DNA from: Hemiscyllium ocellatum
Lineage: Eukaryota
DNA length: 64,000 bases
Assembly: GCF_020745735.1 (NCBI RefSeq)
Contig: NW_026867716.1
Span: 1 to 64,000 of the forward strand
Direction of reading: 5' to 3'
The notes under the pieces were generated by a model that saw only the letters and a program-made list of their open reading frames with translations, was not told the DNA's origin and did not search any database. Of the stretch, positions 1 through 59,403 are shown in pieces; the stretch's first letter is position 1; the number at the start of each line of letters is the position of its first letter. Made by a program: the position numbers and the translations under genes.

Positions 1-54
1 CCCTCCCCTCCCCATCTTCAGCATCTATACCAACCTTTCCCCAGCTATAATCAG

Positions 55-20043: not shown

Positions 20044-20430
20044 CTTTGTCTGCTTCTGGTTGGTCAATGACAATCGCGGATGGAGTGTGGGCTGAGGAAG
20101 GAGGCTCCGCTGTCTTACCCTGCAGCTTCACCCACCCTGACACTCACCTCACACTCACCGGCTCCATCTTATGGTACAAGGGGAGATCACGGTCTTATAT
20201 CTTTAAGTGTACATATCCTGGTCCAGACCATTCCCAGGGTGAGCTGTGTGAGAATGTGAGACAGTGGGACGGTGGGAATCGATTCAGATTCGTGGGGATT
20301 CTCACCAACAAAGATGCCTCAATAATGATGGAGGGACTGAGCCGGGAGAATGCTGGTTCCTATCGGTGTCGTGTGGAGCTCAATATCGGCAAATTTGGAT
20401 CTGGAAAAGGAACAAGCCTGAAAGTGAAAG
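20044..20430 (+). CDS. Ig V-set exon V1 (Siglec-15-like), intact
   Basis: Acceptor ccctcacag, donor AAAG|gtgagc, 387 nt phase 1/1, open frame. WSM..V.AE.G..AVLPCSFTHP..H..W..IFKC..GELC..RFR..G..Y.CRVE matches recalled SIGLEC15 V-set motifs, including the extra Cys pair and the F-strand Arg. Confidence 0.9.
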
Positions 20431-21924
20431 GTGAGCAACAATGTTCTGATATGTCACTGCGCTGACAGCTCAATGGGGACAGGCTCCACAAGGTCCAGGA
20501 GCTCTTGGGTTGGGTTCTTCTCCTGGGCTCTTCCAGTTGGTCTCAGGCAGGAGGCAGTGAGAAGGACAGAGAGAGAGAGAGAGAGGGAGAGACCAGGCTG
20601 GGATTTACAGACCAATCCATTTCTGACTCTGAAACCTCCCACAGTCACTCATTTGCTGTGGTCAGACGGATTCAGCTTTTTGGGGCAGGGAACAGACACA
20701 ACATCATCAAGGATTCAAGCTCCAAGACCCCCTTCCCAATGAGAGTCCTGCTCTATCAGCATTGGGTGAGAAAAAGAGATCCATAAATTCCGAGCCCTCA
20801 TTGGATGAGCACGTCTCAGAGTGAGAGAACCCTCAGGTCACATTGGATGAAAACCTCACTGTTTCTATCTTCACTTTCTATTGGCTGAGCAGAAAATAGA
20901 TGGATGGGGGGAGAAGGACTGTGCAGAGGCTCATGTCCTGGGAAATACTTTCCAATCCAAGGCAGATTGTGAAATTTGAATTTGAAAGGAATCTCGACTG
21001 AAAAACTAGTTTAATAAAAACCATGTAGACACCTCTGACAAAAAAAAACGTGATTCACTCATGTCCTTCAGGGAGGGAAATCTGTATCCTTAATGGTCTG
21101 ACCTACATGTGACCCAATACCTACTGTAATGAGGTTGACTCTCAACTGCCCCCTGAATGACTCACTCTGTTGTGGACAAGGAGTGAACCCAGGAGTGTAA
21201 ATGGAATTGTGGTTCCAAGAGTAGGCCACAGGCTGGAGATCGTGTAAATTAACACACCTCCTGACTCCAAAGCATATTGACCAGTTAGAAGTGTGATGGA
21301 ATACTCCCCACTTGTCTGGAAGAGTGCAGGAAAATATATTGCTCTCCTGTCACTGTTACTGGGTAAAAATCCTGGAACTCCCACCCCAACAGTATTGTAA
21401 CAATAAAAATAACAAAAAAATACACTGCAGCAAGGCAGCAACACTTCCTCCACCAGCACCTTCCAAAGTAGTGACCTCTATGACCTCAGTGTAAAAAATG
21501 GCATCAGATGCAGACCATCCTGACTGGGAAGTATAGTTATCTTTTCATTGTTCAGGGGGACGTGGGTGTCACATGCTCGGTCAGCCTATATTGGCCATCC
21601 CTAATTGCCCTGGAGAAGGGAATGGTGAGCTGCCTTCTTGATCTGCTGCATCCCCTCAGCTGCAGGGAATTCACGATAAGGTTGGTTAAGGATTCCAAGG
21701 GCTTTGTCCCAGTCACACTGAAGTAATGATGAAATATTCCCAAATCAAGATGGTGAGTGTATTGGAGGGAAGCTTGTAAGTGGTGATGTTCTCATGTATA
21801 TAGTGGAGGGAAAGTCATTGATGATACAGCAGGAGATGATTAGGCCGAGGACACTACCCTGAGGAACTCCTGCAGGGATGTTCTGGAGCTGAGATGACTG
21901 ACCAACAACCACAACAATCTGGGT

Positions 21925-22222
21925 TTGATTCCAGTCTGAGGTAACAGTCTGTGTGGAGTTTACACATTCTCCCTGTGTCTGTGTGGGTTTCATCTGGGAA
22001 CTCTGGTTTGCTCGCACAACCCAAAGATGTACAGGTCAGGTGAATTAGCCATGCTAAATTGCTCATAGTGTTCATGGATATGCAGGTTAGGTGGATCAGT
22101 GCAGGGTAAATGTAGAGTAATAGGTTCGGGTAGGAGAATGGGCCTGGGTGGGTCACTCTTCAGAGGGTTGGTGTGGACTTGTAGGGCCAAATGGCCTGCT
22201 TCCACAATGAAAGGATTCTATG
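21925..22222 (+). mobile_element. HE1-like SINE
   Basis: V-domain and tail match the other copies. Confidence 0.85.
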
Positions 22223-22439
22223 AACCATCTTCCTCTGTGCCAGGTCTGATGGAAACCCATGGAGGTTTCTCCCCTCGGCTTCCCACTGGCTCAGGTTCCT
22301 TGATGCTACACTCGCTCAAATACAACCTTGATGTTAAAGGCAGTCACTGACACCTTCCATCAGTTCAATTGGCCTGGTCAGACCCACATTGCTTTTTGTG
22401 GACAGGGTATACCTGGGTAGATGCCAGTGTCATAATTAG

Positions 22440-23650
22440 AAGAAGAACAAATAACAATACAGCACAGGAACATGCCCTTCCATCCCCCAAACCAGCACTG
22501 ACACATTTTGCCTTTCCATACTAAAACTGTCTTCAATTACAGGATCAGCATCCTTTCCTATTCATGTATTCATCCAGGTGCTTCTGGAATGCTGCTATAG
22601 TGTCTGCTTCCACCACCTCCACTGGCAGTGTGTTCCAGCCACTCACCCACCCTTTGTGTGAGAAACCTGCCTTGTACATCTCTTAATACCACCAGCACCT
22701 CCCTCCCCCCCAACCCTCTCCAAACCCCAGCCCCATATCTAAAACCCATGTCCTCTAGTAATTGACCCCTCTACTCTGGGGAAAAGCCTCATATATTCCA
22801 CTTTGCATGTTCCACTTTATACCTGCCATTCACAATCTTATAAACTTCTATTAGGTCGCCCCTCAACCTCCTGTGTTCCAATGAAAACAAACTCAGTCTA
22901 TCCACCTGTTCTTCACAGCTAAAATCCCCCATTCATGACAATCTCCCGGTAAACCATTTCTGTACTCTCTCCAAAGCATCCATATCCTTCTGGTAGTGTG
23001 GTGACTAAAACTGCACCTAATATTCCAAGTGTGGCCGAACTAAAGTTCTTTAAAGCTGCAGCATAACTTTGTCTGTCATTATACTCAATGCTCCTCCCAA
23101 TGAAGGCAATGATGCTGTGGGCCTTTTTCACTCCCTTATCTGTCTGCGTTGCCACCTCCAGTGAGCTGTAGACCTGCACATCCAGATCCCTCTGCGTTTT
23201 AATCCTCCTCAGGGTTCTGCCATTCAGTGTTTAATTTCCACCTGCACTTGACATTCCAAAATACATCAGTCACATTTGTCTGGATTAAATTCCATCTGCT
23301 ATCAAACAGATCTGTATCCTGCTGAATCTTCTGACAATCCTTCTCACTATCCTTAACTCCACCAATCTTTGCATCGCCTGCAAAATTACAATTTAGACCC
23401 GACATATTTTCCTCCAAATCATTGGATAGACCATGAACAGCAGACGTCCCAGCACTGATCCCTGTGGAACATCACTTGTTACAACCCTCCATTCCATTGT
23501 TACCCTCTGTCTCCTATGACTAAGTCAGTTCGGTGTCCACCTTGCCAGCTCACCCCGATACCATGTGACTTCACATTTTTACCAGTCTGCAGTGAGGGAA
23601 CTTGTCAAAGGCTTGACTGAAGTCCATGGAGACAACATCAACTGCTTTCT
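22440..23650 (-). mobile_element. CR1 3' fragment
   Basis: VDVVSMDFSQAFDKFPH, FAGDAKIGG remnants. Confidence 0.85.
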
Positions 23651-23841
23651 GTACTGGAACAGCTGGTTCAGCAATTGTCCCCCACCATTCAGGACTGTCT
23701 AGAGCAGGACTGCAGAGCCATCTGATCCATTGATTATGGGGTGGCTCTGTTGTGTGCTGTTTCTGTTGTTTGATGAGCAAGTAGTCCTGGGGATCTGGGT
23801 GTTGGCCTCACACATATCAGTTTGCCTGGTGTTGCATACAG

Positions 23842-24067
23842 TCAAGGTTAGAGTGGTGCTGGAAAAGCACAGCAGGTCAGGCAGCATCTGAGGAGCAGGA
23901 AAATCAATGTTTCAGGCAGGAACCCTTCATCAGGAATGTGGCTGATGCAGGGCTCCTTCCTGAAAAGATGATTTTCCTGCTCCTTGAATGCTGCCTGACC
24001 TACTGTGCTTCTCCAGCACCACTCTACTCTTGACTCTGATCTTTAGTATCTGCAGTCCTCACTTTCA
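23842..24067 (-). mobile_element. Hairpin-shaped non-autonomous Penelope-derived element
   Basis: Inverted arms of the PLE terminal repeat; minus-strand CTGATGAAGGG..CCTGAAAC; flanked by CCTGGT(G/A)TTGCAT(A/G)CAG at 23825-23841 and 24068-24084. Confidence 0.8.
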
Positions 24068-25716
24068 CCTGGTATTGCATGCAGCAAAATCACATGTCTT
24101 TTCAGTGATCTCCCAGCCTGACGGGAATGTTGGTGTGGGGGGTGTTAATGTGAATTGTGAGGTGACAGATTGAAGTTCAATGGGCTTACAATGTTATCTT
24201 TAACTTGGGAACTTCATACTGGGGAGTCCCGGGGCAACTCCCTCCTGACGGTATACCACTGTGCCTCCACCTCTGCTGGCTCTGTCCTGGTGGTGGGTCA
24301 GGCTGTGTCCAGGGACAGTGATCGTGGTGTCTTTGATATGGTAAGTTATGGTTCTGTGAGTTTGACCATGTGAGGCTGTTAGTCGACCCGTCTGTGCACT
24401 AGCTCCTGGATGTTACTGAGGAGGCCTTTGCAGGGTTGACAGGGCTGGGACTGTTCTCACTGTTATTGGTGCCTTGGTCAATGCAGAGAAGTCTGAGTCT
24501 ATTTGTACTCTTTTGGCATTCCTTCACTGTTGCTGGGTCAAAGTCCTGAAACTCAATCCCTTAAATTACTTTGGATAACCCCGACACCTCAGGGCTGCAG
24601 CAGTTGAAGAAGGCAGCTTCTCTTGGGCAATCAGGATGGACAATAAATGCACATCATCTGGGCCAGTGACACCCATGACCAAATAAAACAAAAGTAGAAA
24701 TTAATGAAACAGCGAACATCCTGAGGAAAATACAAACAAAAATCTGCAGATGCTGCAAATCAGAAACAAAAATGGAAACTGTTGGAAAAGCTCAGCAAGT
24801 CTGGCAGCACCTGTGGAGAGAAATCAGAGTTAATGTTTCAGGCAGAGTGACACTTCCTCAAGATCCTGAGGAGCTTGACAATGCAGTTTCTGAGAGGATA
24901 TTTGCTCTTGTGAACAGAAGTCAAACAGGAGAACAATTACAAAATAACAGATTACTGATTTAAATAAGAATGAGGGAACATTTAATCTCAAAGCTCCTCT
25001 TTTAAGTTCATGAAGCAAAGATCCACATGGCTGGTTATCCCCCCTCCTCCTGCACCCAAATATTTTACTCAGTGTAGGAAAATGTAATCTGGACTCTGAG
25101 TTTAAATTAACCTGTGCTCATTTCAAAGGTCACAGGTTGGAGCTGGTGAATGGTTACATTAGGAATGACACCAGGGGGCTCTCCTTCACACAGAGTGTGG
25201 TCAATACTTTGAAAGTATGTGATCAACAGAGTGAGTGGGGAGGCTGTAAAATCCTTGACCTTCTTTAAAGAATATTAGTATTGAGCATCGGGCGGAGGGT
25301 TCTGCATGAATGAATTCAGGAGGGTTCAATGGATCCGATCTGTAAGTACCTTCAGCGGTCACACGGCACCAGGTTATAGTCCAACAGGTTTATTTGAAAT
25401 AACAAGGTTCAGAGCACTGCTCCTGAATCAGGTCAAGTCCTGGTGCAGTGTGACTTCTGACTTTGTCCACCTCAGTGCAACACTGGCACCCCCACATCAT
25501 GGAAGTATCTTGTAATCAAGGTATTCAAATTGAGTGACGAGGAGACATTTTGATCAGAGAGACTCTTGTTGGGGAATGTCTAGGACAGACCTGTTAGAGA
25601 TGTGAGTGGGGTCTTTAATTGTTCATTTTATTGTGACGTTGAAAGAAATATAACATATTGAAATAAGACTTTCTGCACACTGACCTCATCCATTCTGATG
25701 TTTGTCCTTTCCTCAG

Positions 25717-26064
25717 CTGCTCAGGGAAATGTCTCAGTGGTGAGTGGGACAGAGGGAGATTCAGTTACTTTACCCTGTATCTTCAGTCGCTGGGACTCCC
25801 ACACCCTGACCACTGTTACCTGGATGAGGAAGGAGCCCTACCAACACATTGTTACATTTACAGCCCAATCACAGGGAAATTGGACAACTGGACACGGTGG
25901 AAATCGGTACGAGCTCATCGGGAACCCAGAGGAGGGAAACGCCTCGACCAGGATAAACCAGCTGAGTGTGAGGGACAATCACACTTACCTGTGTCTGGTG
26001 GAATACAGGTCAGAACACAATCTTTTGTATCTGATCCAGAAAGAGACTCGGCTGCAGGTACATG
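25717..26064 (+). CDS. Ig V-set exon V2, intact
   Basis: Acceptor tttcctcag, donor CATG|gtaaga, 348 nt phase 1/1. LPC.F, VTW, RYELIGNP..GNAS.RI, D..TYLCLVEY motifs; N-glycosylation sequons NVS, NWT, NAS, NHT. Confidence 0.9.
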
Positions 26065-27089: not shown

Positions 27090-27600
27090 CCTCTCTCTCC
27101 ATCAGCACCACCTCACACAGGCTTAGGGCTGCTCATAATTCACCAACTCTGCACAGTCCACTTCTACCTGCGCCTTGAGAAAACAAAACACAGACTGGGT
27201 GACCACTTTGCAGAACCGAAATGTTCGTCCACAAAAATGATGCTGAGCATCAGTTGCCTGCCAGATCGACACACCAGCTTTTGGGGACCCAGTGACGTTC
27301 TGGACTCAATATTGGGGTCAATAATTTTAGGGCCTCAGCACCTTCTCCTATCTCCTTCCCCCAACCCCCACACACCAGGCCTTGTCATGACATGAGCTAC
27401 TACCAAAACAATCCATTGTTAGTGACGAATGGTCCCCATTAGCAGCTGTTCATTCTCCCAGGCCGACCTTTCCCCTTTTCTTTGTCTGTCCAATTGCTTT
27501 TCTCTCTCTCTGGGCTCCATTTCCACTGAGTGTTTACTCCTGCCCCCTCACCCCCCTCCCCATCTTCAGCATCTATACCAATCTTTCCCCAGCTATAATC
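27090..27600 (+). mobile_element. Penelope-like 3' fragment at the cassette junction
   Basis: KTKHRLGDHFAE (GIY-YIG region); related 3' repeat at 44655-44975. Confidence 0.7.
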
Positions 27601-30600
27601 AGTTATAGAGTCAAACAGCACAGGAGCAGAGCCTTCAGTTCAACTAGTCCACACTGAACACAATCCCACTTGCCTGCGCTTGGCCCATATCCCTCAAAAT
27701 ATTTCTTATTCATGAAATTATCTAAATGTCTTTTAAGCATTGTAACTTTACCCACATCCACCATTTCCTCTGGAAGCTCATTCCACATGAACCACTCTCT
27801 GTGTAAAATAAAAACTGCCCCTTATGTCTTTTTAAAATCTTTCTCCTCTCACCTTAAAGATATGCCCCCAGTCTTGAAATCTCCCACCTGAGCAAAAAGA
27901 CACCTGCCATTCACTTGATCTAAATTCCTCAGGCTTTCATCGATCTTGATAAGGTCACCTCTCAACCTTGTACACTCCAGTGAGAAATGTCCCAGTCGCT
28001 CCAGCCTCTTCCGGTAACTCAAGGCCTACTTTATCGGCAACATCCTGGTAAATCTCTTCTGAAACCTCTCCAGCTAAATGTTATCCTTGCAATAACAGGG
28101 TGACCAGAACTGGACACAATAGAGGCCTCACCAGCATCCTGTCTAACCTGAACATAATATCCCAACTCCGATTATCAAAAGTCAGAGCAATGAAGGCAAG
28201 TGTGCTGAACCACCGTATATATAGATGATGCAAACTTGGAAGAATTCTGTACCTGAATCCCGAGGTCTCTGTTCTACAGCACTACCCAAGGCCCTACTTT
28301 TAATTGTGTAAGTCTTGCCTTTGTTTGTTTTCCCAAAGTGCAATACCTCACACTTATCTTAAACTCCATCTGTCACTCTTCAGCCCATTAACCCATTTGA
28401 TTATGATCTCTTTGTATTCTAAGATAACCTTCTTTCATTGTTCAATGTACCATCAATGTTGGTATCAACCGCAAACTTGCAAAACATTCTTTCTGTGTTC
28501 TTACCTCAATTTTTAAAATAAATGACTGACAAAAGTGGGCCCAGCCCTGATCCCCGTGGAACCCTGCTGGTCACAGGCCTCCAGAACAAAACCCTTCCTC
28601 CACCGTCACTCTCTGTCTTCTGCCTTTCAGCCAATTGTGCATCCACTTGCCAAGCTCACCCGGAATCCCATGGGATCTAACTTCACTAATTAGTCTACCA
28701 TGCGGAACTTTGTCAAAGGATTTACCAAAGTCTAAGTAAACAATGTTAACCCCTCTGCCCTCAACAATTTTCTTGTTTACCTCTTCAAAAAACTCAATCA
28801 AGTTTGTGAGACACAATATCCCTTGCACAAAACCATGCTGACTATCACTAGAGTCATAGTGCCATAGAGATGTACAGCATGGAAACAGACCGTTCAGCCC
28901 AACCCATCCATGCTGACCAGATATCCCAACCCACTCGAGTCCCACCTGCCAGCACCGGGCCCCTATCCCGCCAAACCCTTCCTATTCTTATACCCATCCA
29001 AATGCTCTTAAATGTTGCAATTGTACCAGCCTCCACAACTTCCTCCAGCAGCTCATTCCATACATGTACCACTCTCTCTGCGAAAACTTTGCTCCTTAGA
29101 TCTGCTTTATATCTTTCCCCCTCACCCTAAACCTATGCCCTCTAGTTCTGGACTCCCCAACCCCAGGGAAAAGACTTTGCCTATTTATCCTATCCATACC
29201 CCTCATAATTTTGTAAACCTCTGTAAGGGCACCCCTCAGCCTCTGATGCAACAGGGAAAATAGCCCCAGTCTGTTCAGCCTCCCCCTGAAGCTCAAATCA
29301 TCCAATCCTGGCAACATCCTTGTAAATCCTTTCTGTACCCTTTCAAGTTTCACAACATCTTTCCAGTAGGAAGGAGACCAGAATTGCACACAATCTTCCA
29401 ACAGTGGCCTAACCAATGTCCTGTACAGCTGCAACATGACGCCCCCGGCTCATGTACTCAATACTCTGACCAATAAAGGAAAGCATATCAAATGCCTACT
29501 TCACTATCCTATCTAACTGCGACTCCACTTTCAAGGAGCTATGAACCTGCACTCCAAGGTCTCTTTGTTCAGCGACACTCCCTAGGACCTTACCATTACG
29601 TGTATAAGTCCTGTTAAGATTTGCTTTCCCAAAATGCAGCACCTTGCATGTATCTGAATTAAACTCCATCTGTCACTTCTCAGCCCATTGCCCCAACTGA
29701 TCAAGATCCTGTTGTAATCTGAGGTAACCCTCTTTGCTGTCCACTACACCTTCACTTTTGGTGTCATCTGAAAACTTACTAACTGTACCTCTTATGCTCG
29801 CATCCAAATCATTTATGTATATGACAAAAAGTAGTGGACCCAGCACTAATCCTTGTGGCACTCCACTGGTCACATGCCTCCAGTCTGAAAAACAACCCTC
29901 CATCACCACCCACTGTTTTCTACCTTTGAGCCATTTCTGTATCCAAATAACTGGTTCTCCCTGTATTCCATGAGATCTAATCTTGTTCATCAGTCTCCCG
30001 TGTTGACTATCCCTAATCATTCCTTGCCTCTCCAAATGCATATAAATCCCAAATTTCAGAATTATTTTCAACAACTTATCCACCACTGAAGTCAGACTCA
30101 CAAGTCTGAAGTTCCCAGGCTTCTCCTGACATCCCTTCTTGAACATTAGTCACTCTCCATTCACTCAGCGTCTCACTCGTATTTATAGATGATACAAATG
30201 TTTCTGCAAGGTGCCCAGCGATTTCCTCTTAACCTGTGACAAAGTCCTGGGATTCATGAAATCAGGGCTCAGAGATTTATATTTTCAAAGACCTCCAGCC
30301 CTTCCTCTTCTGTAATGCAAACTGTTTTCAAAACATCAATATTTATTTCTCAGTGTTCTCTCGCTTCCACTTCTCTCTCCACAGTAAAAACTGACACAAA
30401 ATATTCACTTAAGATCTCTCCTATCTCCTGAGGTCGAACACAAAGGCAATCTCTTTGCCCTGTACTCTGTCTCTTGTTGCTGTCTTGGTCTTAATGTATT
30501 TATAGAATCCCTTTGGATTATCCTTAACCTTACTTGTTGAGGCTATCTCATGTCCTTTCTTTGACTTCCTGATCGCCCTCGTATGAATGCCCCGACACTC

Positions 30601-31500
30601 ATTATATGGTGCAAGAGATCCATTTGGATCCAGTTGTTTATATTTAGTGTATGATTCTCTCCTATCCCTGACTGGAACCTCAATCTCTTTGTTCACACAT
30701 TGTTCCCGAAAGCAGTACAGTTGAAACCGCCCTTTGTGAACGGTCTTTTCTGTCTCAGAAGAGGTCGCAGTGATCCAAGAATCTGAATCCCTCTTCAGCC
30801 ATTGATTTGTCTCCTTTATCCTTTTGTTCCCTCATCTGAGCTTGGCTTTGGGAGTAAACCAGAAATTACTGCTTTTGTGGGTCTGTTTTTTAATCTTCGA
30901 CCTAACCTTTGATATTACTTTGTGAAGCCTGAATCCTTTCCCTAACAATGTCATTCCCATCAATGTGTACAAAAACATCTGGGTTCTCATTATTCCCTTT
31001 AACAGTATGCTTCAAACATTTTGCAATGTCCGTAATCCTAGCACCAAGAAAACAGTATTATATCCTAGATCCATGCTCACTGCTGCAGAACCTCCTGTCT
31101 GTGCCCTTGACAGGAGAATCATGTAAAACAATTATTCTTTTAAATTTTGTCAAACCCCTTTGAACATAAGGTTCATTTTTAGCGCCCAAGATCTGACTGT
31201 CCCTTCTAATTTCCTCTGAGAGATTATCCTTTCAACAGTACGAGAGATTTCTGAACTACCTTCTTACCTTTCCTGACAGTCATCCATCTATCTGACTGAT
31301 CCTGCTGTGTTATCACCTCTCGAAATCTACTGGCCATCTAACTCTGCGTCTCTTGTATGTCCGCAATGTCATTAAGTCAACAAAGAAGCAACTTACACTG
31401 ACATTTTAACTCTAAAATAAACCACATTTCTTTATCCAAAGAGCTAATATTAAGCACAAGTGTTCAGCAGACAGCTATCAATGTTCTGATTAAAAATAAA
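27601..31500 (-). mobile_element. Two CR1 copies duplicated from 55-3990
   Basis: Same motifs and nesting as copy 1. Confidence 0.9.
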
Positions 31501-33475
31501 ATCCCGCTCCAGAGCCAACCACGCGTTAATCTGTCCAAGAGCTCTGTGAACACAACTTGGTTTGAAACAAAACTTCCCTCAGCAATTATTATTTTCCATC
31601 AGCAAAACTTCCCACAGCCCACATGTGGGCCTATCCAAAAAGTCCATTGATAGGATTCTGTTTGATAAAAAAAATTGTGCCTGTCCATTTTGGGAATTTC
31701 TTTTGTGTTTTTGAATATAAAATAACTAAAAGTGAATCAAACAAAAAGCTTTTCTGACTGAAATGTAATAAATGTAAGAAAGCTGGAAGTAAATTTGAAA
31801 ATAAATCTGAATCTCAGGAGCAGCTGCAAGACCCACACTCCTCTCAGTCCACTGTTTTTGATCATTTTATTTCTGAAGAAGTGTCACTGGACCCAAAACA
31901 TTAACTCTACTTTCTCTCCACAGATGTCACCATACCTGCTGAGTTTTTCCCACAATTTCTGTTTTTGTCTCTGCCATCCTTACTTGGTCAGGTCTCTCCA
32001 GGACAGGGGTGGACAGTACATCAGGATTGAAGAAGGGTGTTCACTGTGTCAGGTCAGTGGAAGCAAGTGTGGGTCCTGGAGGTTGGGCCAGGGGCTGTGT
32101 GAGGAACAGCAGTAGGTCCCATGATTTCTGTCCCTAGCCCCATCTACACGTGAATGCTAACCCACTGTATTATATTTGCCGGCTGGGTAAGGAATCATCT
32201 ATGATGCTGGGGACATCTTCTGAGTCAAGGTGGTGTGAATGCCACAGCCCTATTATTTGCACTGATGAGCAGGGCTCCCCCTCATTGAGGATGGGGATAT
32301 TTGTGGAGACTCATATTCCTATTAGTTGCTTAATTGTCCTCACCCATTCATAACTGCATGTGACAGGTCTGCTGAGCTTATATCTGATGCACTGACAGTG
32401 GAATCACTTCCCCCAGAGCATCAATTGTGGTTTATGCTGTTTGACACAGAAGTAGTTTTATAGCTGACATCTCATTTTCAGGTTTGCTGGTGATGTTCCT
32501 GGCATCACCTCCTGCATTGTTCATTGAACCGGAATTGATGTCCTGACTTGATGTTAATGGCTTAGTGGGGGAGAATTACATGCCATGAGCTTACAGATTG
32601 TGTTACAGCTCACTTCTGCTGTACTGATGGTCCACAGTGTCTCAGGGATCCCAGTCTTGACTTGCTCGATCTGTTCAAAGACTGTCCCATTTAACTCAGG
32701 CCTAGTGCCATACATGATGGGGATGTACCTCAATGTGAAGATGGGACTTTGTCTCCACGGGACTGTGTGATAGTTACTCCTCCCAATCCTATAATAGGCA
32801 GATAGACGGCTGAGGACAAGGTCAAGCTTTTCTCTCTTGTTGGTTCCCTCACCACCCGCCACAGACCCAGTCCAAGAGCTATGTCATTTCAGATTCCACC
32901 AGCTCAGGCAGTAGTAAAGCTGCTGAGTCTGTCTTGGTGTTGGACAGTGACGTCTCCCACCCAGAGTACATTCTGTGCCAGTCTTGACCTCAGTGCTTCC
33001 TCCAAGTGGTGATAAACATGATCAGAAGCCTGGGAGTGGGGGGATTGTGACAGTGTGTAGTCATCCAGAGATTCCCTTGCTCATGTTTGACCTGATGCCA
33101 TCGGACCTCATGATAATGTTTCGAGATCAGAAAGTTCTGCTTAGCAACTGCTGTCTGATTGGTTGAACTGCAGCTGTTACAAAGCTATACGTTCCTGGAG
33201 TGTCTGAAAGCTTAAAGTAACTAGAGCCTACAGAGAGAAAGCAGCCAGCTCTGCCTCTCCCTCATCACTGCAGAGAAAAGCAGAGAAAATACAAGTTATC
33301 TGGAAAGAAAGAAGTCACATGTGAAAAGTTCTAAGTTCACCTGAATGGCCGTTGAATTTGAAGCATAACTATCACTGTCCAGAACACAGCATCTCATTCC
33401 TGCTAAAAAAACACAAGGACTGTGAGAGAGAATGATCGTTCCATCTTTTTTTTAAGATTACTTAAAAAAAAGTAA

Positions 33476-33760
33476 TCTTTTAAGAATCCGCAGGGTGGAA
33501 ACAGGCCCTTTGGCCCAACAAGTCCACACCGACCCGCCAACCCCTACATTTACCGCTTACCAAACACTACGGACAATTTAGCATGGCCAATTCACCTGAC
33601 CTGCACATCTTTGGACTGTAGGAGGAAACCGGAGCAAACCCACGCAGACACGGGGAGAATGTGCAAACTCCACACAGTCAGTCGTCTGAGGTGGGAATTG
33701 AACCTGGGTCTCTGACGCTGTGAGGCAGCAGTGCTAACCACTGTGCCACCATGCCACCCA
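33476..33760 (-). mobile_element. HE1-like SINE (duplicate of 5881-6171)
   Basis: Same position within block X. Confidence 0.9.
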
Positions 33761-33841
33761 CAAAAAGTCATGTAGTCAGGACTTTTATTTTCAGAGTTTT
33801 GTTTACCCTGTTACCCTGTCTACATTCTTTTGTCACTCATG
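33751..33841 (+). CDS. Candidate leader exon, cassette B (duplicate of 6163-6253)
   Basis: Same length, frame and donor as copy A; MPPTKSHVVRTFIFRVLFTLLPCLHSFVTH. Confidence 0.3.
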
Positions 33842-33877
33842 GTAGAAATATAAATCATCTATCTTTTCTCTGTCTTT

Positions 33878-33908
<31 letters not shown>

Positions 33909-34184
33909 CTGTGGCTTTGAAGGGATGCTGTTTAGGAGCATTAATTAGGTATCAATTTCTTTCACTGCTCTTATTACTGGAATTAATAATTAATGGAATT
34001 ATTTAACTGTTACTGAAGAATCCTGGTGTGGCTCACGTCTGTCCTGAGTAACAGTCTGTCAGGCACTTTGGGTGTAAGGGTGATCCTATTGGGATTCTTG
34101 TACATTTGTGTAGCTGCTGACAATGTGTAGAGCAGTAGGACATGTTCAGACATAACATGACTCATTGGGTTTCATGAAGGAGTG

Positions 34185-34500
34185 TGATTAGATTAGATTA
34201 CTTACAGTGTGGAAACAGGCCCTTCAGCCCAACAAGTCCACACCGACCCGCCGAAGCGCAACCCACCCATACCCCTACATTTACCCCTTACCTAACACTA
34301 CGGGCAATTTAGCATGGCCAATTCACCTGACCCGCACATCTTTGGACTGTTGGAGGAAACCGGAGCACCCGGAGGAAACCCACGCAGACACAGGGAGAAC
34401 GTGCAAACTCCACACAGTCAGTCGCCTGAGTCGGGAACTGAACCCGGGTCTCAGGCGCTGTGAGGCAACAGTGCTAACCACTGTGCCACCATGCCGCCCA
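34185..34500 (-). mobile_element. HE1-like SINE present only in copy 2
   Basis: Empty site in copy 1 (gaaggagtgatgaag near 6575-6590); short AGTG duplication. Confidence 0.92.
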
Positions 34501-35831
34501 AGTGATGAAGATGATTGATGAATGGAGAGTGGTGGACATGGCCTAACTGGACTTCAGCAAGGTATTTGACAAGGTTCTGCATGATAGACTGGTTAACAAG
34601 GTTAGATCACATGGAATACAGGAGGAACTAGCCATTTAGATACATAACTGGCTTGAAGATGTGTGGTGCAGAGTGTGGTGGTGCAGGATTGCGTTTTAAA
34701 CTGGAGGCCTGTACCCAGCGGTGTGCTGCAAGGATCAGTGCTGGATCCACTGCTTCTTGTCATTTATATAAATGGCTCGGATATGAAAATCAGAGAAATG
34801 GTCAGTAAGTTTCCAGATGACACCAAAATTGGAGGTGCAGTGAACAGCAAAGAAGGTTATCACAGAGGACAACGGGACTTTGATCAGATGGGCCAATGGG
34901 CTGAGGAGTGGCAGATGGAGTTTAACTTAGATAAATTTGAGGTGTTGCATTTTGGTAAGGCAAATCAGGGCAGGACTTATACACTTCCTGGTAAGGTACT
35001 GGGGAGTGTTACCAAACAAAGAGACCTTGATGTGCAGGTTCATTGTTCTTTGAAAGTGGAGTCAAAGGGTAGACTGGTTAATGAAGGAAGCATTTGGTAA
35101 ACTCACCTTTATTGATCAATGCAGGAATTAGGAGATCTTATCATGGCTGTACAGGATGCTGGTTGGACCACTTTTGGAATACTGCATTCATTTCTGGCCT
35201 CCCTGCTGTACGAAAGATGCTGAGAAACTCAAAAGGATTCAGAAAAGATTGGGGAGAATGATACCAGGGCTGGAGTGCTTGAGTTGTGGACAAAGCTGAA
35301 TAAGCTGGGGCAAGATTCCCTGGAGTGTTGGTGGCTGAAGGGTGACCTTATAGATATTTATAAAATCATGGATTCAGACATGATAAATAGTCAAGGTCTT
35401 TTCTCCAGGGTACGGGCGTCCAAAACTAGAGGGCACAGGTTTAAGGTGGGAGGGGCAAGATTTAAAAGGGACCGAAGGGACACCATTTTCATGCAGAGTG
35501 TGGTGTCTGAACATCAGTGAACCAGATGGATTTTTTCCAACAATTGATCATGGTTTCATGGTTCCCATTAGACTGGTGTTTAATTCCTGATGTAATAACT
35601 GAATTGAATTTCCAGCAGCTGCCATGGTGGGAACTGAAACTCTGTCCCCAGTGTATTGGATTGCTCATGAATTTACATTACTATTTGTTCACTACCTCTC
35701 ATTATAGCTGTGAAACCTGTTCTCACTAAATAACACACTCAGAATAGAGTCTCCAAGTTTCAGATCCACACACTGATATCTGTCCCAGTGCTGTGTTCAT
35801 ATCCTCTCTCTCCCAGTCTTTCCCCTCACAG

Positions 35832-37974
35832 CGGTTTCTGCTAAGGTTTAGAACATAGAACATAGAACATTACAGCACAGTACAGGTCCTTCAGCCCTCG
35901 ATATTGCACCGACCAGTCATGCCAATCTGAAGCCCATCTAACCTACACTATTCCATGTACCTCCATAGGTTTGTCCAATGATGACTTAAATGCACTTAAA
36001 GTTGGTGAATCTACAACAGTTGCCGGCAAAGCATTCCATACCCTTACTACTCTCTGAGTAAAGAAACTACCTCTGACATCTGTCCTATATCTATCACACC
36101 TCAATTTAAAGCTATGCCCCCTCGTGCTCGCCATCACCATACTTGGAAAAAGGCTCTCCCTGTCCACCCTATCTAACCCTCTGATTATCTTTTTTTTCTC
36201 TATTAAGTCACCTCTCAACCTTCTTCTCTCCAACGAAAACAGCCTCAAGTCCCTCAGCCTTTCCTCGTAAGACCTCCCCTCCATACCAGACAACATCCTA
36301 GTAAATCTCCTCTGCACCCTTTCCAAAGCTTCCACATCCTTCTTATAATGTAGTGACCAGAATTGTACACAATACCCCAAGTGCGGCTGCACCAGAGTTT
36401 TGTACAGCTGTAGCATAACCTCATAGTTCCGGAACTCGATCCCTCTATTCATAAAAGCTAAAACTGTATGCCTTCTTAACAACCCTGTCAACTTGGGTGG
36501 CAACTTTCAAGGATCTGTGTACATGGACACCAACACCTCACTGCTCATCTGCACTGCCAAGAATCTTACCATTAGCCCAGTACTTTGCATTCCGGTTACT
36601 CCGGCAAAGTGAATCACCTCACATCTGTCCGCATTAAATCCTATTTGCCACCTCTCAGCCCAGCTCTGCAGCTTATCTATGTCTTTCTGTAATCTACAAC
36701 ATCCTTCGTCACTATCCACAACTCCACCGACCTTAGTGTCATCTGTGAATTTACTAACCCACCCTTCTACGCCCTCATCCAGGTCATTTGTAAAAATGGC
36801 GAACAAGAATGGACCCAACACCGACTCTTGCGGTATATCAGTATTATCTGGACTCCAGGATGAACATTTCCCATCAACCACCACCCTCTATCTTCTTTCA
36901 GCAAGCCCATTACTGATCCAAACAGCTTTATCTCCCACAATCCCATTCCTCCGTATTTTGTACAATAGCCTACTGTGGTGAATCTTATCGAATGCTTTGC
37001 TCAAATCCATATTCACCACATCAACCAGTTTACTCTCATCTACCTGTTTGGTCACCTTCTCAAAGAACTCAGTAAGGTTTGTGAGGCATGACCTACCCTT
37101 CACAAAACCATGCCGACGATCCCTAATCAAATTATTTTTTTCTAGATGATATTAATCCTACCTCTTATAATCTTTTTCAACACTTTACCAACAACTGAAG
37201 TCAGGCTCACTGGTCTATAATTACCAGGGTTGTCTCTACTTCCCTTCTTGAACAGAGGAACCATATTTGCTATCGTCCAGTCTTCTGGCACTATTCCTAT
37301 AGACAATGACGATTTAAAGATCAATGTCAAAGGCTCGGCAATCTCCTCCTTGGCTTTCAAGAGGATCCTAGGATAAATCCCATCCGGCCTAGGATAAATT
37401 CCATCACACTCTACAGGGTTTCTAATACCTCTTCCTTGTGAACCTCAATCCCACCTAGTCTAGTAGCCTGTATCTCAGTATTCTCCTTGACAACATTGTC
37501 GTTTTCTAGAGTGAATACTGTTGAAAAATATTCATTTAGTGCTTCCCCTGTCTCCTCTGACTCTACACACAACTTCCCACTACTATCCTTGGTTGGCCCT
37601 TGATTGAGCAATGACAATAGCGGATGGAGTGAGGGCTGAGGAAGGAGGCTCTGCTGTCTTACCCTGCAGCTTCACCCACCCTGACACTCACCTCACACTC
37701 ACCGGCTCCGTCTTATGGTACAAGGAGGAAACACGGGCTTTTATCTTTAACTGTACATATCCTGGTCCATACCATTCCCAGGGTGAGCTGTGTGAGAATG
37801 CGATACAGCTGGACAGTGGGAATTGATTCAAATTCGTGGGGAGACTCACCAACAAAGATGCCTCAGTAATGATGGGGGGACTGAGCCAGGAGGATGCTGG
37901 TCCCTATCAGTGTCATGTGGAGCTCAATATTGATAGTTTTCAAACACAGTCTCCAACAAAGCTGGAAGTTGAAG
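35832..37974 (+). pseudogene. Disrupted V1 exon, cassette B
   Basis: Exon start at 35832 (ccctcacag|CGGTTTCTGCT) is split by a CR1 insertion (~35849-37600). In-frame TGA at 37605-37607 (Trp in A) and 37824-37826 (CGA in A); CRVE becomes CHVE; donor GAAG|gtaagg retained. Confidence 0.9.
35849..37600 (-). mobile_element. 5'-truncated CR1 inserted in the V1 exon of cassette B
   Basis: (AGAACAT)n tail at 35850; RT motifs GNYRPVSLTSVVGK, MDLSKAFDK, SKFTDDTKVGG. Confidence 0.95.
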
Positions 37975-54050: not shown

Positions 54051-55006
54051 AATGTTTCCCGTCTCCATCTTGGATTACCCAGAATCCTGAATATCTCTTG
54101 CTCACAGACAGAATGCAGGTCCCTGCTGATGAGCTGCTAATGTGGGTTGTCCTTTTAAGAAGCTGCTCGAACACTCAGAGTTGGAAAGTAATCAATAGAC
54201 TGAGGTAAATGACAGGTTAATGATTTCTGAGCAGGATTTGTCAATTTCCAGCTGTTTGTAAATCTCTAGCTCCCGATTCACCGTCCCCAAATTAACCTGC
54301 AATTTATCCTCATGCAAAACTGAAATGTTGCTCATTTTTATCACAGGGGATACTTTGAATTGTAACGAATGTTTTATGGAGGGAAAGATTAAACTGTTAT
54401 CACTTACAGTGAGTGCTGAGGTTAAAAAGAATGTTTTTGTGAATCCTACTATTTTCTCCCTTGCTCTCCAAGCAGCTGAATTTCCATTGGATGGGAATGT
54501 GATTTCCGTATCACCCTCCACTTTCCAAGATTTCCATGCCCTGTAATATACTCCAAAGTTACAGCAGATGGGAAGCCCCTGCAAGCACTTTCCCCTCATC
54601 TCCAACACCCTCCCTCCCTGCCCTGTGACTAGTTGCTCCAAGCTGACCCAGAGCTGCCTGGAATGATCTGTCACTGTGATTCCTGACAGTGTCTGCACAG
54701 CCCTCCCTGTGTTACAGCTGCTGACTACACCTTGGGTTCCCTGGGTGCCAGCCATATTCTGATGCCAAGGCAAAACTGTTTCTCATGACAACTTATTCAA
54801 TGGTGGCTTTTCTGATTGTGTCCACATCTGAGTATCTGTGATTTCTATCAAAGTTCATTCCATTAACGGTGTTGATCACTCTTTGGAATCTGTTCTCTGT
54901 GTAACCAAAGCAAGAGATTGATGTCCAGTCAGAATGTTCCTTTCTGTGACCTGGCAGAATGCATTTAGATTCCTTGGAATATTCATGTTCCTTGTGTATT
55001 TTTCAG

Positions 55007-55068
55007 GAATGATCCAGGTTCATCCAGCATTCCCGGGACTGATCAGGCCCAGCAGCTCACTGTTCCAG
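55007..55068 (+). CDS. Cytoplasmic mini-exon 2
   Basis: gtatttttcag acceptor, CCAG|gtactg donor, 62 nt phase 2/1, complementing the phase-2 end of the previous exon; NDPGSSSIPGTDQAQQLTVP. Confidence 0.7.
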
Positions 55069-57190
55069 GTACTGTCTGTACTCTAACTGACTGATCATTG
55101 TCCATTTCAGAGACTCTAACAGAGAGAGTGTGAATCCTGGAGAGATATTCAGGGGCAGACCGTTACATTGAGTTAAACAGTTCTCCAGCACAGAATAAAG
55201 CCCTTCGGCCCATTGACTCTGCATCTGTTGAAAACTATCCCTACCCCCAACCTTAACCCTTCACACTTATTGCACAGATTGACGTCTTTGATAGATGAAC
55301 CTTTTAACTTTCAGACCATTCAATGTAAATGAGTGAAAAGCTATGGGTTTCCATTAAGGGATCTGACCAGACTCTGGATTATTGTCCGGGCAATGGAGAT
55401 GGAAATATTCTCCTCAGTCCCTGACCCTGGATGGATTCTTGGACAATAACCATTTCCGATTCCCTGAATCATCTGGCTGAGTAACTGGCTCGGCCCGGTC
55501 CTTGCTGTCTCGAGCTGTTCACGGCCAGTCTGTCTGCTGCTTCGGGATGGGTCAAGGAAAACAGTCAAGATGTGAGTCACACATCTCAAATGACTCCCAG
55601 TAGCTGGGCTGCTGGGGAACCTGAGGATCAGGTTCATGCTCTGGGGAGAGGGGTTCAATTTTCACCATGGCAACTTGCAGAATTTACATTTAATTATTAA
55701 ATCTGGAAGCATAAACTCAACTCTGTGATGGTGGCCATCTGAATTAACATTAGTTGTTGTCTTAAAAAAGTTCTGGTTCACCAGTCTCCTTCAGGGAAGC
55801 ATCTTTACCCAATCTGCCCGACAGGTGACTTCAGATCCCCATTTCAAACCTCAGTGTGTCTTTTTAGGAGCGATTGAATACAATGTGTCTGACTCTGACC
55901 TGCTGCCCTCTGAAATGGCCAAGCAAGCCTCTCACTTCAAGGGTGTTCAGGGATGGGCAACAAACGCTGGCCTTGCCTGTGAGACCCACGTGCCTTGCAC
56001 GGAGATGAAAACTACTGAATCTGTTCTCACTCTCTTCTCAATCCCTGCATCCTCTAATGCTCCCCCCCTGCCTCACCTCAACTCTCCACCAGCGTCCAAC
56101 ATTGAACATAGACATTACAGTGCAGCATAGGCCCTTTGGCCCTCGATGTTGTGTCGACTTGTGAAACCAATCTGAAGCCCATCAAACACTATTACATTTT
56201 CATCCACATGTTTATCCAATGACCATTAAATGCCCTTCAAGTTGGTGAGTCTACTGCTGTTGCAGGCAGTGTGTTCCACACTTATACTACTCTCTAAGTA
56301 AATAAGCTACCTCTGACATCTGTCCGATATTGATCCCCCCTCAATTTAAAGCTATGCCCCTTCGTGCTAGCAATCACCATCTGAGGAAAAAGGCTCTCAC
56401 TGTCCACCCGATCTAACCCTCTGATTATTTTATGTTTCAAATCAGTCAGCTCTCAGCCTTCTTCTCTCTGATGGAAACAGCCTCAAGTCCCTCAGCCTTT
56501 CCTTGTAAGACCTTCCCTCCATACCAGGCAACATCCTCGTAAATCTCCTCTGCACCCTTTCCAAAGCTTCCACATCCTTCCTGTAGTACGGTGACCAGAT
56601 CTGCATTCAATACTCCAAGTGCAGCCACACCAGAGTTTTGTACAGCTGCAGCATGACCTCATGGTTCCAAAACTCAATCCCTTCACTAATACAAGCTAAC
56701 ACATCATATGCCTTTTTAGCAATTCTATCAATCCAGGTAGCAACTTTCAGAGATCTATGTGCATGGACACCAAGAACTCTCTGCTCATCTACACCACCAA
56801 AAATCTTACTATTATCCCAGAACTCTGTATTCCTGTTACTCCTTTCAAAGTGAATTGCCTCACACTTATCCACATTAAACTCCATTTGCCACCTCTCAGC
56901 CCAGCTCTGCAGCTTATCTATGTCTCTCTTTAACCTACAACATCCTTCAACATGATCCACAACTCCACCAACCTGAGTGTCATCTGCAAATTTACTAACC
57001 CATCCATCAAAGCCCTCACCCGGGTCATCCACAAACATGACCCAAAACAGATCCTTGTGTACACCACTAGTAATTGAACTCCCGAATAAACATCTCCCAG
57101 CAACTAGCACTCTCTGTCTCCTTTCAGATAGCCAATTTCTGATCCAAACAACTAAATCACCCTCAATCCCATTCCTTCATATTTTGTGCA

Positions 57191-57393
57191 GTAAAAAGTG
57201 AGGTCTGCAGATGCTGGAGATCAGAGCTGAAAATGTGTTGCTGGTTAAAGCGCAGCAGGTCAGGCAGCATCCAAGGAACAGGAAATTCAACGTTTCGGGT
57301 CCTGATGAAGGGCTCTGGCCCGAAACGTCGAATTTCCTGTTCCTTGGATGCTGCCTGACCTGCTGCGCTTTAACCAGCAACACATTTTCAGCT
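57191..57393 (+). mobile_element. Hairpin-shaped non-autonomous Penelope-derived element
   Basis: 76-bp inverted arms (57225-57300 / 57318-57393) with 2 mismatches; 10-bp TSD ATTTTGTGCA at 57181-57190 and 57394-57403; interrupts a CR1. Confidence 0.93.
57302..57329 (+). ncRNA. Intact minimal type I hammerhead ribozyme motif
   Basis: CTGATGA-A-GGGC-TCTG-GCCC-GAAAC-GTC: full core, 4-bp stem II, palindromic ACGT stem III, GUC triplet. Confidence 0.8.
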
Positions 57394-59226
57394 ATTTTGT
57401 GCAATAGCCTACCATGGGCAACCTTATCAAATGCCTTATTGAAATCCATATACACCAAATCAACAGCTTTCCCCCCAATCCACCTGTTTGTTCACCTTCT
57501 CAAAGATCTCAATGAGGTTTGTGAGGCATGACCTACCCTTCACAAAACCATGTTGACTATCCCTAATCAACATATTCCTTTCCAGATGATTATAAATCTT
57601 ATCTCTTATAATCTTTTCCAACACATTACCCTCGTTACTCACTGGTCAATAAGTACCAGGGTTGTTCTCTACTCCCCTTCTTGAACAAAGGAACAACATT
57701 TTCCCTCCTCCATCTTCTGACACCATTCCTGTCGACAATGACAACATAAAGATCAAAGTGAAAGGCTCAACAATCTCCCCCCTGGCTTTTCAGAGAACCC
57801 ATGGGAAATCCCGTCCGACTTATCTATTTTCACACTTTCCCAAATTGCTAACACCTCCTCCTTGTGACCATCAATTCCATCTCGTCTAGTAGCTTGTATC
57901 TCAGTATTTTCCTCGACAACGTTATCTTTATCTTGTGTGAATACTGAGAAAGAATATTCATTTACCGCTTCCCCTATCTCCTCTGACTTGGTGTACAACT
58001 TCCCACTACTATCCTTGATTGGCTCTAGTCTTACTCTTGTCATTCTTTTATTCCTGATATCCCTATGGAAAGCCTGAGGGTTTTCCTTGATCCTATCTGA
58101 CAATGATGTCTTATGTCCCCTCCTGGCTTTTCTTAGCTCTCTCTTTAGGTCTTTCCTGGCTAACTTGTCACTCTCAAGCACCCTAACTGAGCCTTCACAT
58201 CTCATCCTAACATAAGCCTTCTTCTTCCTCTTGACAAGAGATTCAACTTTCTGAGTAAACCACGGCTCCCGCGCTCAGCAACTTCCTCCCAGCCTGACAG
58301 GTACATATGGATCAAAGACCCACAGTAACTGTTCCTTGTCTAAGCTGCACATTTCAATTGTGCCCATTCCCTCCAGTTTCCTTGCCCAATCCATGCATCC
58401 TAAATCTTGCCTAATCACATCGTAGTTGCCTTTCCTCCAGCTCATAACTCTTGTCCTGCAATATATATCCATCCCTTTCCATTGCTAAAATAAACTGAAC
58501 CAGTTTGTGGTCACTATTACAAAAGTGCTCACCTACCTCCAAATTGAACACCTGGCCAGGTTCATTACCCAGTACCAAATCTGACGTGGCCTCGTCCCTT
58601 GTTGGCCTGTCTGTGTACTGTGTCAGGAAATCCTCCTGTACACATTGGACAACAACTGACCCATCTAAAGTAGATGAACTATAGTATTCCATATACTATT
58701 TCCAAATAGTCAATATTTGGAAAGTTAAAGACCCCCATAACAACTACTGTTTCACTCTTGCTCCTGTCCTGAATCATCTTTATTATCCTTTCCTCTACAT
58801 CTCTGAACTATTTGGAGGCCTATAGAAAACTCCCGACAGGGTGACATCATCTTTCCTGTTTCTTATCTCAGCCCATACTACCTCAGTAGACAGTCCTCAA
58901 ATGTCCTTTCAGCAATCATAATATTGTCCTTGACTAACAATGCCACCACACAAACCCTCCACCGACCTTACCATCTTCCCTGTTCTTACTGAAGCATCTA
59001 AATCCTGGAACTGCAACAACCATCCCTGTCCCTACACTACCTATATCTCCAAAATGGCCACAACATCAAAGTCCCAGGTACCAACCCATGCTGCAAGTCC
59101 AATATTTCACCCGCTCCAATCACATCTCTAACTCAGAGAATGATATGGTTTCCACTGACCCATTGCTGACATTTAAGGACAAGCCTGTCGATGCATGGCC
59201 CTTTATCATTCCTGTTTGTGTTACAG

Positions 59227-59274
59227 ATCAGGACAGTTCCATCCTCTATGCCGAGATTGACAGCAACAGAACAG
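59227..59274 (+). CDS. Cytoplasmic mini-exon 3 with ITIM
   Basis: cctgtttgtgttacag acceptor, ACAG|gtaaat donor, 48 nt phase 1/1; (D)QDSSILYAEIDSNRT. ILYAEI fits the ITIM consensus (I/V/L/S)xYxx(I/V/L). Confidence 0.8.
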
Positions 59275-59367
59275 GTAAATGGCTGCACCTTAAAGGTTTT
59301 GAGCAATTGTCTAATTGATATTCAGATTCTATAATCAAACTAAGAGAACATTTTGTCTTTGTTAAAG

Positions 59368-59403
59368 GTGGCAAGAGATTCACAAACAGTCTGTCAGAAG
59401 ACC
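59368..59403 (+). CDS. Cytoplasmic mini-exon 4 (candidate)
   Basis: ttttgtctttgttaaag acceptor, GACC|gtgagt donor, 36 nt phase 1/1; (G)GKRFTNSLSED; 93-nt intron from the ITIM exon. Confidence 0.55.

Follow-up and report, generated by a model that had tools for sequence, protein, structure and literature searches.

How the V domain of Siglec-15, which is treated as a conserved single-copy activating Siglec, might come to stand at the tip of an inhibitory receptor is the question raised by a locus of the shark Hemiscyllium ocellatum that lies within a 64,000-nucleotide (nt) stretch of contig NW_026867716.1, referred to as the window in what follows. Vertebrate SIGLEC15 itself is the subject of Angata (2007). 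An earlier note on this DNA had suggested that the exons encode a cartilaginous-fish inhibitory receptor related to Siglec-15, composed of two V domains (V1 and V2), a transmembrane (TM) helix and a cytoplasmic tail with an immunoreceptor tyrosine-based inhibitory motif (ITIM). Our analysis leads to the view that the gene in question, LOC132809452, probably codes for a type I receptor in which a distal Siglec-15-type V1 domain that has kept its F-strand Arg is followed by a glycosylated V2 domain, an uncharged TM segment and an ITIM tail. The ancestry of V1 and the ITIM tail thus stand as suggested, while the suggestion is corrected in three respects: the gene is a paralogue of SIGLEC15, it is already annotated, and its 5' end is absent from the window.

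Gene structure and identity

The gene model comprises seven exons that extend from 20044 to 59403 on the plus strand (Table 1). All seven are framed by an AG acceptor and a GT donor, their phases chain as 1-1-1-2-1-1-1, and the joined frame remains open over 345 codons; an open chain of exons with matching splice sites is far beyond chance. The V1 motifs that had been quoted from this stretch are all found in place on the plus strand, with WSM at 20061-20069, VLPCSFTHP at 20112-20138 and YRCRVE at 20361-20378, and with IFKC, GELC and RFRFVG likewise present.

Searching with V1 in HMMER, followed by a further homology search, retrieved two RefSeq isoforms of LOC132809452, X4 and X5, to which the joined product is identical, namely to XP_060678549.1 (X4) over the V1-V2 part and to XP_060678550.1 (X5) from the TM exon to the last of the cytoplasmic exons (a, b, ITIM and d). 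RefSeq lists them as ‘uncharacterized protein LOC132809452’, and the window carries most of this gene, the model of which is already public. Isoform X4 joins V1, V2 and the four cytoplasmic exons and skips the TM exon in frame, and isoform X5 joins V1 to an acceptor inside V2 and then continues with the TM exon and the tail. Taken together, X4 and X5 use every proposed junction, and the exons that had been considered parts of one gene are indeed linked in these models. At the level of predicted products, the V-V-TM-ITIM layout is the union of the two isoforms, and it is also the full layout of paralogues such as LOC132826572 (P0163), the 410-residue product of which is complete from leader through V1, V2 and TM segment to tail. 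In-frame skipping of the TM exon, as in X4, may give rise to a soluble form that still contains the tail sequence.

Siglec-15 ancestry of the distal V domain

V1 passes the Pfam V-set model with an E-value of 9e-12. Comparison of the single V1 sequence with the PDB yields human Siglec-15 (7ZOZ) as the best match (1.5e-11), with TIM-3 representing the next family (2e-5). A profile of the family, built from shark and ray V1 domains only, sharpens this ranking: 7ZOZ is matched at 5e-22, followed by JAML (8e-10), CD33 (8e-9), NKp30 (2e-6) and sialoadhesin (3e-6), and the corresponding scores amount to 81.5 bits for Siglec-15, 42 for JAML, 39 for CD33, 36 for TIM-3 and 31 for NKp30. Structure prediction, which had been named as one check on the identity of V1, leads to the same family. 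An AlphaFold model of V1 with a predicted local distance difference test score of 82, which is poor over residues 55-78, has 7ZOZ as its first match in Foldseek, followed by sialoadhesin, CD33, Siglec-7, Siglec-8 and PILR.

Placement in a tree of 79 V domains, for which the most distant matches to V1 (two unnamed proteins and one from a frog, listed by NCBI as pIgR-like) served as the root, agrees with the searches. The shark and ray V1 domains form a clade of their own (support 100/99), which lies inside a starred clade (98/97) together with the V domains of bony-vertebrate Siglec-15 and domain 1 of cartilaginous-fish proteins with a V-V-C2 ectodomain (from Callorhinchus, Heptranchias, Pristis, Amblyraja and Mobula). 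Other Siglecs, NKp30, CD300 and PILR are outside the tree, and the PDB profile ranking stands in for them.

At the level of residues, shark V1 domains were aligned with Siglec-15 of mammals, frog, turtle, teleosts and lungfish and with three of the V-V-C2 proteins. The Cys-Arg of the F-strand is invariant across this alignment, the Arg being present in each of the 28 shark V1 and vertebrate Siglec-15 domains, and the YRCRVE of V1 aligns with the FCRVE of human and golden-mole Siglec-15. Near-invariance across the Siglec-15 alignment extends to the B-strand Cys and to the WSM Trp, and a G-strand Phe of V1 takes the position of human Y154. In human Siglec-15, R143 forms a salt bridge with sialic acid, and W44 and Y154 provide CH-pi contacts (PMC10264397). 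The cysteines of V1, that is, Cys26 and Cys108 along with an extra pair, Cys54 and Cys69, align at the sequence level with the disulfide positions of Siglec-15, where C64-C142 is an inter-sheet bond and C95-C104 a disulfide unique to Siglec-15 (PMC10264397). Nearly all members of the family and of bony-vertebrate Siglec-15 retain this extra pair, whereas cartilaginous-fish V-V-C2 proteins lack it; the loop that it encloses is longer in V1 than in tetrapod Siglec-15.

It might be argued that the Siglec-15 motifs are convergent or due to chance and that V1 stems from another family with V domains only, such as NKp30/NCR3, NITR, CD300/pIgR, PILR or TIM; a grouping with NKp30 or CD300 had been named as the outcome that would speak against the original suggestion. 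Such an origin would be in accord with the absence of a C2 domain, as in those families, with the varying NCBI names of the relatives (pIgR-like, JAML-like, A33-like and HAVCR1-like), and with a summed score of V2 against the five-domain pIgR that is slightly above its score for Siglec-15. However, none of the pIgR domains that contribute to this sum passes on its own, and the best single-domain match of V2 in the PDB is Siglec-15 (5e-13). For V1, the profile score for Siglec-15 lies far above those listed for JAML, CD33, TIM-3 and NKp30, the tree joins V1 to Siglec-15 with starred support and leaves the frog pIgR-like and the two unnamed distant proteins as the outgroup, and the extra Cys pair specific to Siglec-15 is present. 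We therefore consider descent from another V-only family highly improbable, and ancestry from NKp30, CD300, pIgR, PILR or TIM is largely rejected on the PDB profile ranking and the domain tree. Profile ranking, fold match, tree and key residues instead clearly point to V1 being derived from Siglec-15.

Second V domain, transmembrane segment and cytoplasmic tail

V2 is a second V domain, as had been claimed (Pfam V-set, E-value 2e-17), and bears all four N-glycosylation sequons of the ectodomain. Neither the window nor the RefSeq product was found to include a C2 domain exon, and no exon coding for a TM segment with Lys was detected within the window. The TM helix, LVIPLLILLLLLIIIVIIFITF, is devoid of charged residues, in agreement with the earlier description. 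The motif ILYAEI, too, is where the tail had been proposed, at 59241-59258 on the plus strand and within an exon that matches RefSeq. This exon has no self-repeat match within the window, belongs to the RefSeq product and recurs in paralogues and in other shark species in the forms xxYAEI, YADI and YVEI; judged from its sequence and conservation, the ITIM exon of the window is genuine.

The last 45 residues of the RefSeq product, PQPDSCTYASIVFDSNRKGGKTLRVADSEESESADVTYAAVVKTH, are coded beyond the window and include CTYASI and VTYAAV. The full tail of about 110 residues accordingly contains two canonical ITIMs, ILYAEI in the window and VTYAAV beyond it, with a YASI motif in between, and both ILYAEI and VTYAAV are conserved in paralogues and in other species. 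An uncharged TM segment together with at least one cytoplasmic (S/I/V/L)xYxx(I/V/L) motif is what defines an ITIM receptor at the level of sequence, and both are found here.

A shark and ray family of Siglec-15 paralogues

Under many automatic names, relatives of LOC132809452 are annotated in no fewer than 20 species of sharks and rays, H. ocellatum alone having a dozen or more loci, and a search of the literature found no paper that describes a shark Siglec-15-like family. The V2 domains of the family form a clade (100/99) whose sister group (94/84) is domain 2 of the V-V-C2 proteins, in which His occupies the position of the Arg. The tandem of an Arg-bearing V domain and a V domain without Arg hence predates the shark and ray family, which would most simply have arisen by loss of the C2 domain. 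Since the C2 domain and the TM Lys are absent, and since the shark and ray domains form their own clade next to a separate V-V-C2 lineage, LOC132809452 is a Siglec-15 paralogue with a new domain layout and not the orthologue.

The TM segments and tails were surveyed in cluster representatives among the relatives fetched. About 41 of these representatives have a neutral TM segment, most of them with an ITIM tail, and in about 24 a TM segment with a central Lys, of the type ILCIPLGLKTLALLVM, is followed by a short tail. The TM-Lys helix of the family resembles the TM segment of Siglec-15 (LPLGALGLKVLLLVG in golden mole). The genome of H. ocellatum also encodes such a member, P0190 (LOC132829874), which consists of leader, V1, V2, TM segment with Lys and short tail and is 71% identical in V1 and 73% in V2. 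Of the earlier idea of a paired activating and inhibitory family, it is thus the family-level part that stands, with TM-Lys and ITIM forms in one genome; the window itself contains no partner, and a tight pair was not found.

The F-strand Arg of V1 differs in its fate between the two kinds of members. It is invariant in the ITIM-tailed, neutral-TM domains that were aligned (19 of 19), and in the wider survey all neutral-TM members keep it except for one from Heptranchias, which has His. Several TM-Lys members, by contrast, have replaced it by His, Tyr, Ser or Gly. In the carpet sharks (Hemiscyllium and Chiloscyllium), the TM-Lys members P0190, P0188, P0004 and P0193 have His or Tyr at this position, whereas the ITIM members P0163, P0151 and P0169 keep the Arg; TM-Lys members of Heterodontus, Scyliorhinus and most rays likewise keep it. 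Almost no variation is seen at the Trp and at the G-strand aromatic position in V1 of the family.

Among teleosts, two Siglec-15 relatives, P0056 from Labeo rohita (named Siglec-15) and P0122 from Albula glossodonta (named ‘hypothetical protein’), have a V-C2 ectodomain without a TM lysine, and their tails contain the tyrosine motifs TVYANI and VCYTEV. DAP12-coupled Siglec-15 is therefore not universal in fishes, and an inhibitory-looking Siglec-15 relative has a precedent.

Duplicated and decayed blocks within the locus

The intron of 19 kb between V2 and the TM exon contains a decayed pair of V domain exons, V1' and V2', which both RefSeq isoforms skip. V1 and V2 are intact, while V1' and V2' between them carry three stop codons, a lost acceptor and a frameshift. 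Since the TM and tail exons follow this dead copy, the live V1/V2 pair must be spliced over it. A second duplication concerns block X, which occupies the very start of the window and matches sequence behind V2; a further V1/V2 block just upstream is thereby implied, and the arrangement suggests that such a block, perhaps along with the leader, may lie immediately beyond the edge of the window. Block Y'', finally, extends no further than the first bases of a V1-type exon flank; judged by its similarity to the flank of V1', it is what remains of a third V1 copy.

Fragments of long interspersed nuclear element (LINE) reverse transcriptase abound in the introns. The longest open reading frame of the window (510 codons, 48364-49896, minus strand) contains a reverse-transcriptase domain (Pfam RVT_1, E-value 3e-30), and fragments related to it are located at 50219-50731, 29673-30146, 16456-17172 and 56607-57110.

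Table 1. Exons of LOC132809452, decayed exon copies and duplicated blocks in the window.
Feature	Positions	Strand	Characteristics
V1 exon, Siglec-15-type V-set	20044-20430	+	phase 1 at both ends; strong polypyrimidine acceptor
V2 exon, second V-set	25717-26064	+	YLCLVE, Arg replaced by Leu; extra Cys pair absent
Stalk and TM exon	45463-45579	+	VKTQPAQYVSVYSLVIPLLILLLLLIIIVIIFITFRKKG; 117 nt; helix uncharged
Cytoplasmic exon a	48028-48067	+	GSQQMDLTAALK; phase 1 to phase 2
Cytoplasmic exon b	55007-55068	+	NDPGSSSIPGTDQAQQLTVP; phase 2 to phase 1
ITIM exon	59227-59274	+	DQDSSILYAEIDSNRT; I-L-Y-A-E-I fits (S/I/V/L)xYxx(I/V/L)
Cytoplasmic exon d	59368-59403	+	GKRFTNSLSED; ends in phase 1
V1' pseudo-exon	37588-37974	+	86% identical to V1; acceptor lost; TGA at 37605 and 37824; Arg codon changed to His (37914-37916)
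V2' pseudo-exon	43343-43689	+	93% identical to V2; TGA at 43417; 1-nt deletion at the donor shifts the phase
Block X	5-7361		93-94% identical to 27553-35282; spacing 27.5 kb
Block X', second copy of X	27553-35282		starts about 1.5 kb after V2, in its intron; rich in LINE fragments
Block Y''	56098-58023		80% identical to 35852-37597 (flank directly upstream of V1'); LINE reverse-transcriptase remains

The 5' end and the status of this copy

Since the V1 exon begins in phase 1 and is preceded by a strong polypyrimidine acceptor, it is not the first coding exon, and another one upstream is to be expected. In paralogues, the leader reads MRSLYVCLSAVLLSVSVRG, and for LOC132809452 we infer a leader located either upstream of the window or outside the scaffold. 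Two candidates for a leader inside the window were rejected. That at 18386 is part of a repeat: a signal-peptide-like reading, MPETSILLLLGCCLTC at 18380-18450, is surrounded by what we take to be a common shark interspersed repeat and is a false candidate. The other, MESLRVFL at 58065, is attributed to chance. Separately, a frame that opens with an ATG at 19944 reads through the acceptor into V1 (19944-20043; MLYIFSSYNRFSVLPHCLVSVLCSYPLSLSPLTALSAS-GWSM). The resulting reading is weakly hydrophobic and probably represents a translated pyrimidine tract rather than a leader, although it would serve as a cryptic leader in transcripts that are initiated upstream and not spliced.

Several observations on this gene weigh against the view that it codes for a complete receptor with a working Siglec-15-type binding site: (i) the 20 kb that precede V1 yielded no convincing leader exon, neither among hydrophobic ATG exons with a phase-1 donor nor by motif or by tblastn with the leaders of paralogues; (ii) X4 and X5 both begin at the Met inside WSM, and neither therefore has a signal peptide; (iii) the whole V-V-TM-ITIM layout is present in neither isoform, X4 being devoid of the TM segment and X5 of half of V2, and homology searches covering 129-715 residues found neither isoforms X1-X3 nor assembled transcripts (Logan contigs); (iv) the protein sequence of TM segment and tail is nearly identical to that of a chromosomal gene (P0198/P0219), from which it differs in one four-residue stretch, SESA; and (v) compared with tetrapod Siglec-15, the F-G loop of V1 lacks three residues, and no clear counterpart of human Y87 is present. 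Moreover, LOC132809452 is located on an unplaced scaffold of 122,477 bp, and this position together with the near-identity of TM segment and tail to the chromosomal gene means that the scaffold could represent a haplotig or a partial duplication of very recent date.

Read in this way, the copy in the window would be either a haplotig of the assembly or a duplicate that is truncated at its 5' end and non-functional; its exons would be real and perhaps transcribed but would yield no secreted or membrane protein for want of an attached leader. The missing leader exon, the internal start of both isoforms and their aberrant structure (TM exon skipped in one, half of V2 in the other), the unplaced scaffold, the chromosomal near-double of TM segment and tail, and the decaying sister exons within the same locus would all be explained. 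Yet the seven exons are intact over their entire open frame, in contrast to the three stops and the frameshift accumulated by V1' and V2' at 86-93% identity; the strong phase-1 acceptor of V1 is as expected when the exon is spliced to an upstream leader or V2 exon; and block X implies more of the gene upstream. Evidence pertaining to expression points in the same direction. In two small runs made from the same sample as the genome DNA runs, sequence words of the V1 exon are present at 56% and 39%, and none of 126 sampled words of the intron region 20700-21900 is found, whereas the DNA runs contain both exon and intron words. RNA would give such a pattern, which suggests transcription of V1 and removal of intron 1. 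We thus regard a dead or truncated copy as an unlikely, albeit not negligible, alternative to the receptor described at the outset.

Proposed function and evolutionary history

If LOC132809452 is such a receptor, V1 would be held off the membrane by the glycosylated V2 domain and use its F-strand Arg to bind a sialylated ligand, and the WSM Trp would act in the place of human W44 and the G-strand Phe in that of Y154. Src-family kinases would then phosphorylate the ITIMs, and the ensuing recruitment of SHP-1 or SHP-2 would dampen activating signals, while the TM-Lys relatives would signal through a DAP12-like adaptor. For LOC132809452, both sialic-acid binding and SHP recruitment are here inferred from sequence features.

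The proposed lectin activity is to be weighed against the possibility that the receptor is Siglec-15-like by descent and no longer a lectin, in which case V1 might see a protein or pathogen ligand and the Arg would have been kept for structural or historical reasons. The family is large, exhibits birth-and-death evolution and includes TM-Lys partners, which is typical of paired receptors driven by pathogens (for the concept, see PMC6288428). Within V1, the longer loop between the extra cysteines, the shorter F-G loop and the poorly modelled residues 55-78 could be read in the same sense, as could the replacement of the Arg by His, Tyr, Ser or Gly in several TM-Lys members. On the other hand, conservation of the Arg in the ITIM-tailed V1 domains, with a single exception in the wider survey and with the Trp and the G-strand aromatic residue nearly invariant as well, argues for selection on the sialic-acid site, and the best fold matches are all V domains that bind sialic acid (Siglec-15, sialoadhesin, CD33, Siglec-7, Siglec-8 and PILR). 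On balance, loss of the lectin function appears rather doubtful, and recognition of a sialylated ligand by V1 is the reading that we prefer.

As for the history of the locus, an ancestor with the layout V(Arg)-V(non-Arg)-C2 may have lost its C2 domain, after which the V1/V2 block would have been copied in tandem inside the gene. The copy that adjoins the TM exon would then have decayed and is now spliced over, and the leader, perhaps with one more block, would be situated upstream. Extended to the whole family, it is conceivable, and we put this forward tentatively, that sharks and rays have made the Siglec-15 lineage into a fast-evolving multigene family of their own, which is devoid of C2 domains, has the layout V(Arg)-V(Leu) and expanded by tandem copying of V1/V2; the ITIM members would have kept the Arg, and their DAP12-type TM-Lys partners would have lost it in some lineages, for example in carpet sharks. 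In that case, self sialic acid sensing that employs paired decoy and activating receptors would have had an independent origin at the base of the jawed vertebrates.

In mammals, the CD33-related group comprises expanded Siglec families with ITIMs and paired members (PMC6288428), a development that the expansion in sharks and rays would parallel. Taken by itself, the locus of the window is modest news, considering that its gene model is public and that it appears to be a fairly ordinary member of its family. The import lies rather with this undescribed receptor family, in which the V domain of Siglec-15 sits on an inhibitory, C2-less scaffold of two V domains, with at least a dozen loci in one genome. 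Should Arg-dependent lectin function hold, inhibitory sensing of self sialic acid and the evolution of paired receptors would turn out to be older and more often reinvented than assumed so far, and structure-function work would moreover gain natural variants of the Siglec-15 binding site from the family.

Comparison with known systems

Among known receptors, SIGLEC15 (PDB 7ZOZ; PMC10264397) is closest to LOC132809452 in its V domain, with which V1 shares the WSM...AVLPCxFTHP pattern, the cysteine pairs corresponding to C64-C142 and C95-C104, the Arg of R143, the Trp of W44 and the G-strand aromatic residue. It differs in that a C2-set domain takes the place of the second V-set. Furthermore, the TM segment of LOC132809452 is without the lysine that couples Siglec-15, with its short tail, to DAP12/DAP10, so that coupling to DAP12 is not expected, and is followed by a long ITIM tail, the F-G loop is shorter and the extra-Cys loop longer, and V1 belongs to a separate shark and ray clade.

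The order of an Arg-bearing V domain and a V domain without Arg is shared with the cartilaginous-fish V-V-C2 proteins (Callorhinchus LOC103174418, P0023; Heptranchias, P0028; Pristis, P0224). These comprise a TM-Lys form in Callorhinchus and a neutral-TM form with a tyrosine-bearing tail in Heptranchias. Unlike LOC132809452, however, they have kept the C2-set domain and have His instead of Leu in domain 2, and their TM segments and tails are unrelated to those of LOC132809452.

The CD33-related Siglecs, including Siglec-5/14 and Siglec-11/16 (PMC6288428), resemble the shark and ray family in combining an Arg-bearing V domain with an ITIM tail, in having expanded by duplication, and likewise in DAP12-type TM-Lys partners and repeated loss of the Arg (PMC6288428). 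They nonetheless constitute a separate lineage with another disulfide pattern in the V domain, always possess C2-set domains and carry an ITIM together with an ITIM-like motif in the tail; the two expansions are independent. PILR-alpha and PILR-beta, lastly, share with the family an ectodomain made of V-set only, a siglec-like fold (rank 19 in Foldseek), Arg-dependent recognition of sialic acid and the pairing of ITIM and TM-Lys forms, but have a single V domain, match the single V1 sequence with an E-value of only about 0.01, and exhibit neither the Siglec-15 motifs nor the extra Cys pair.

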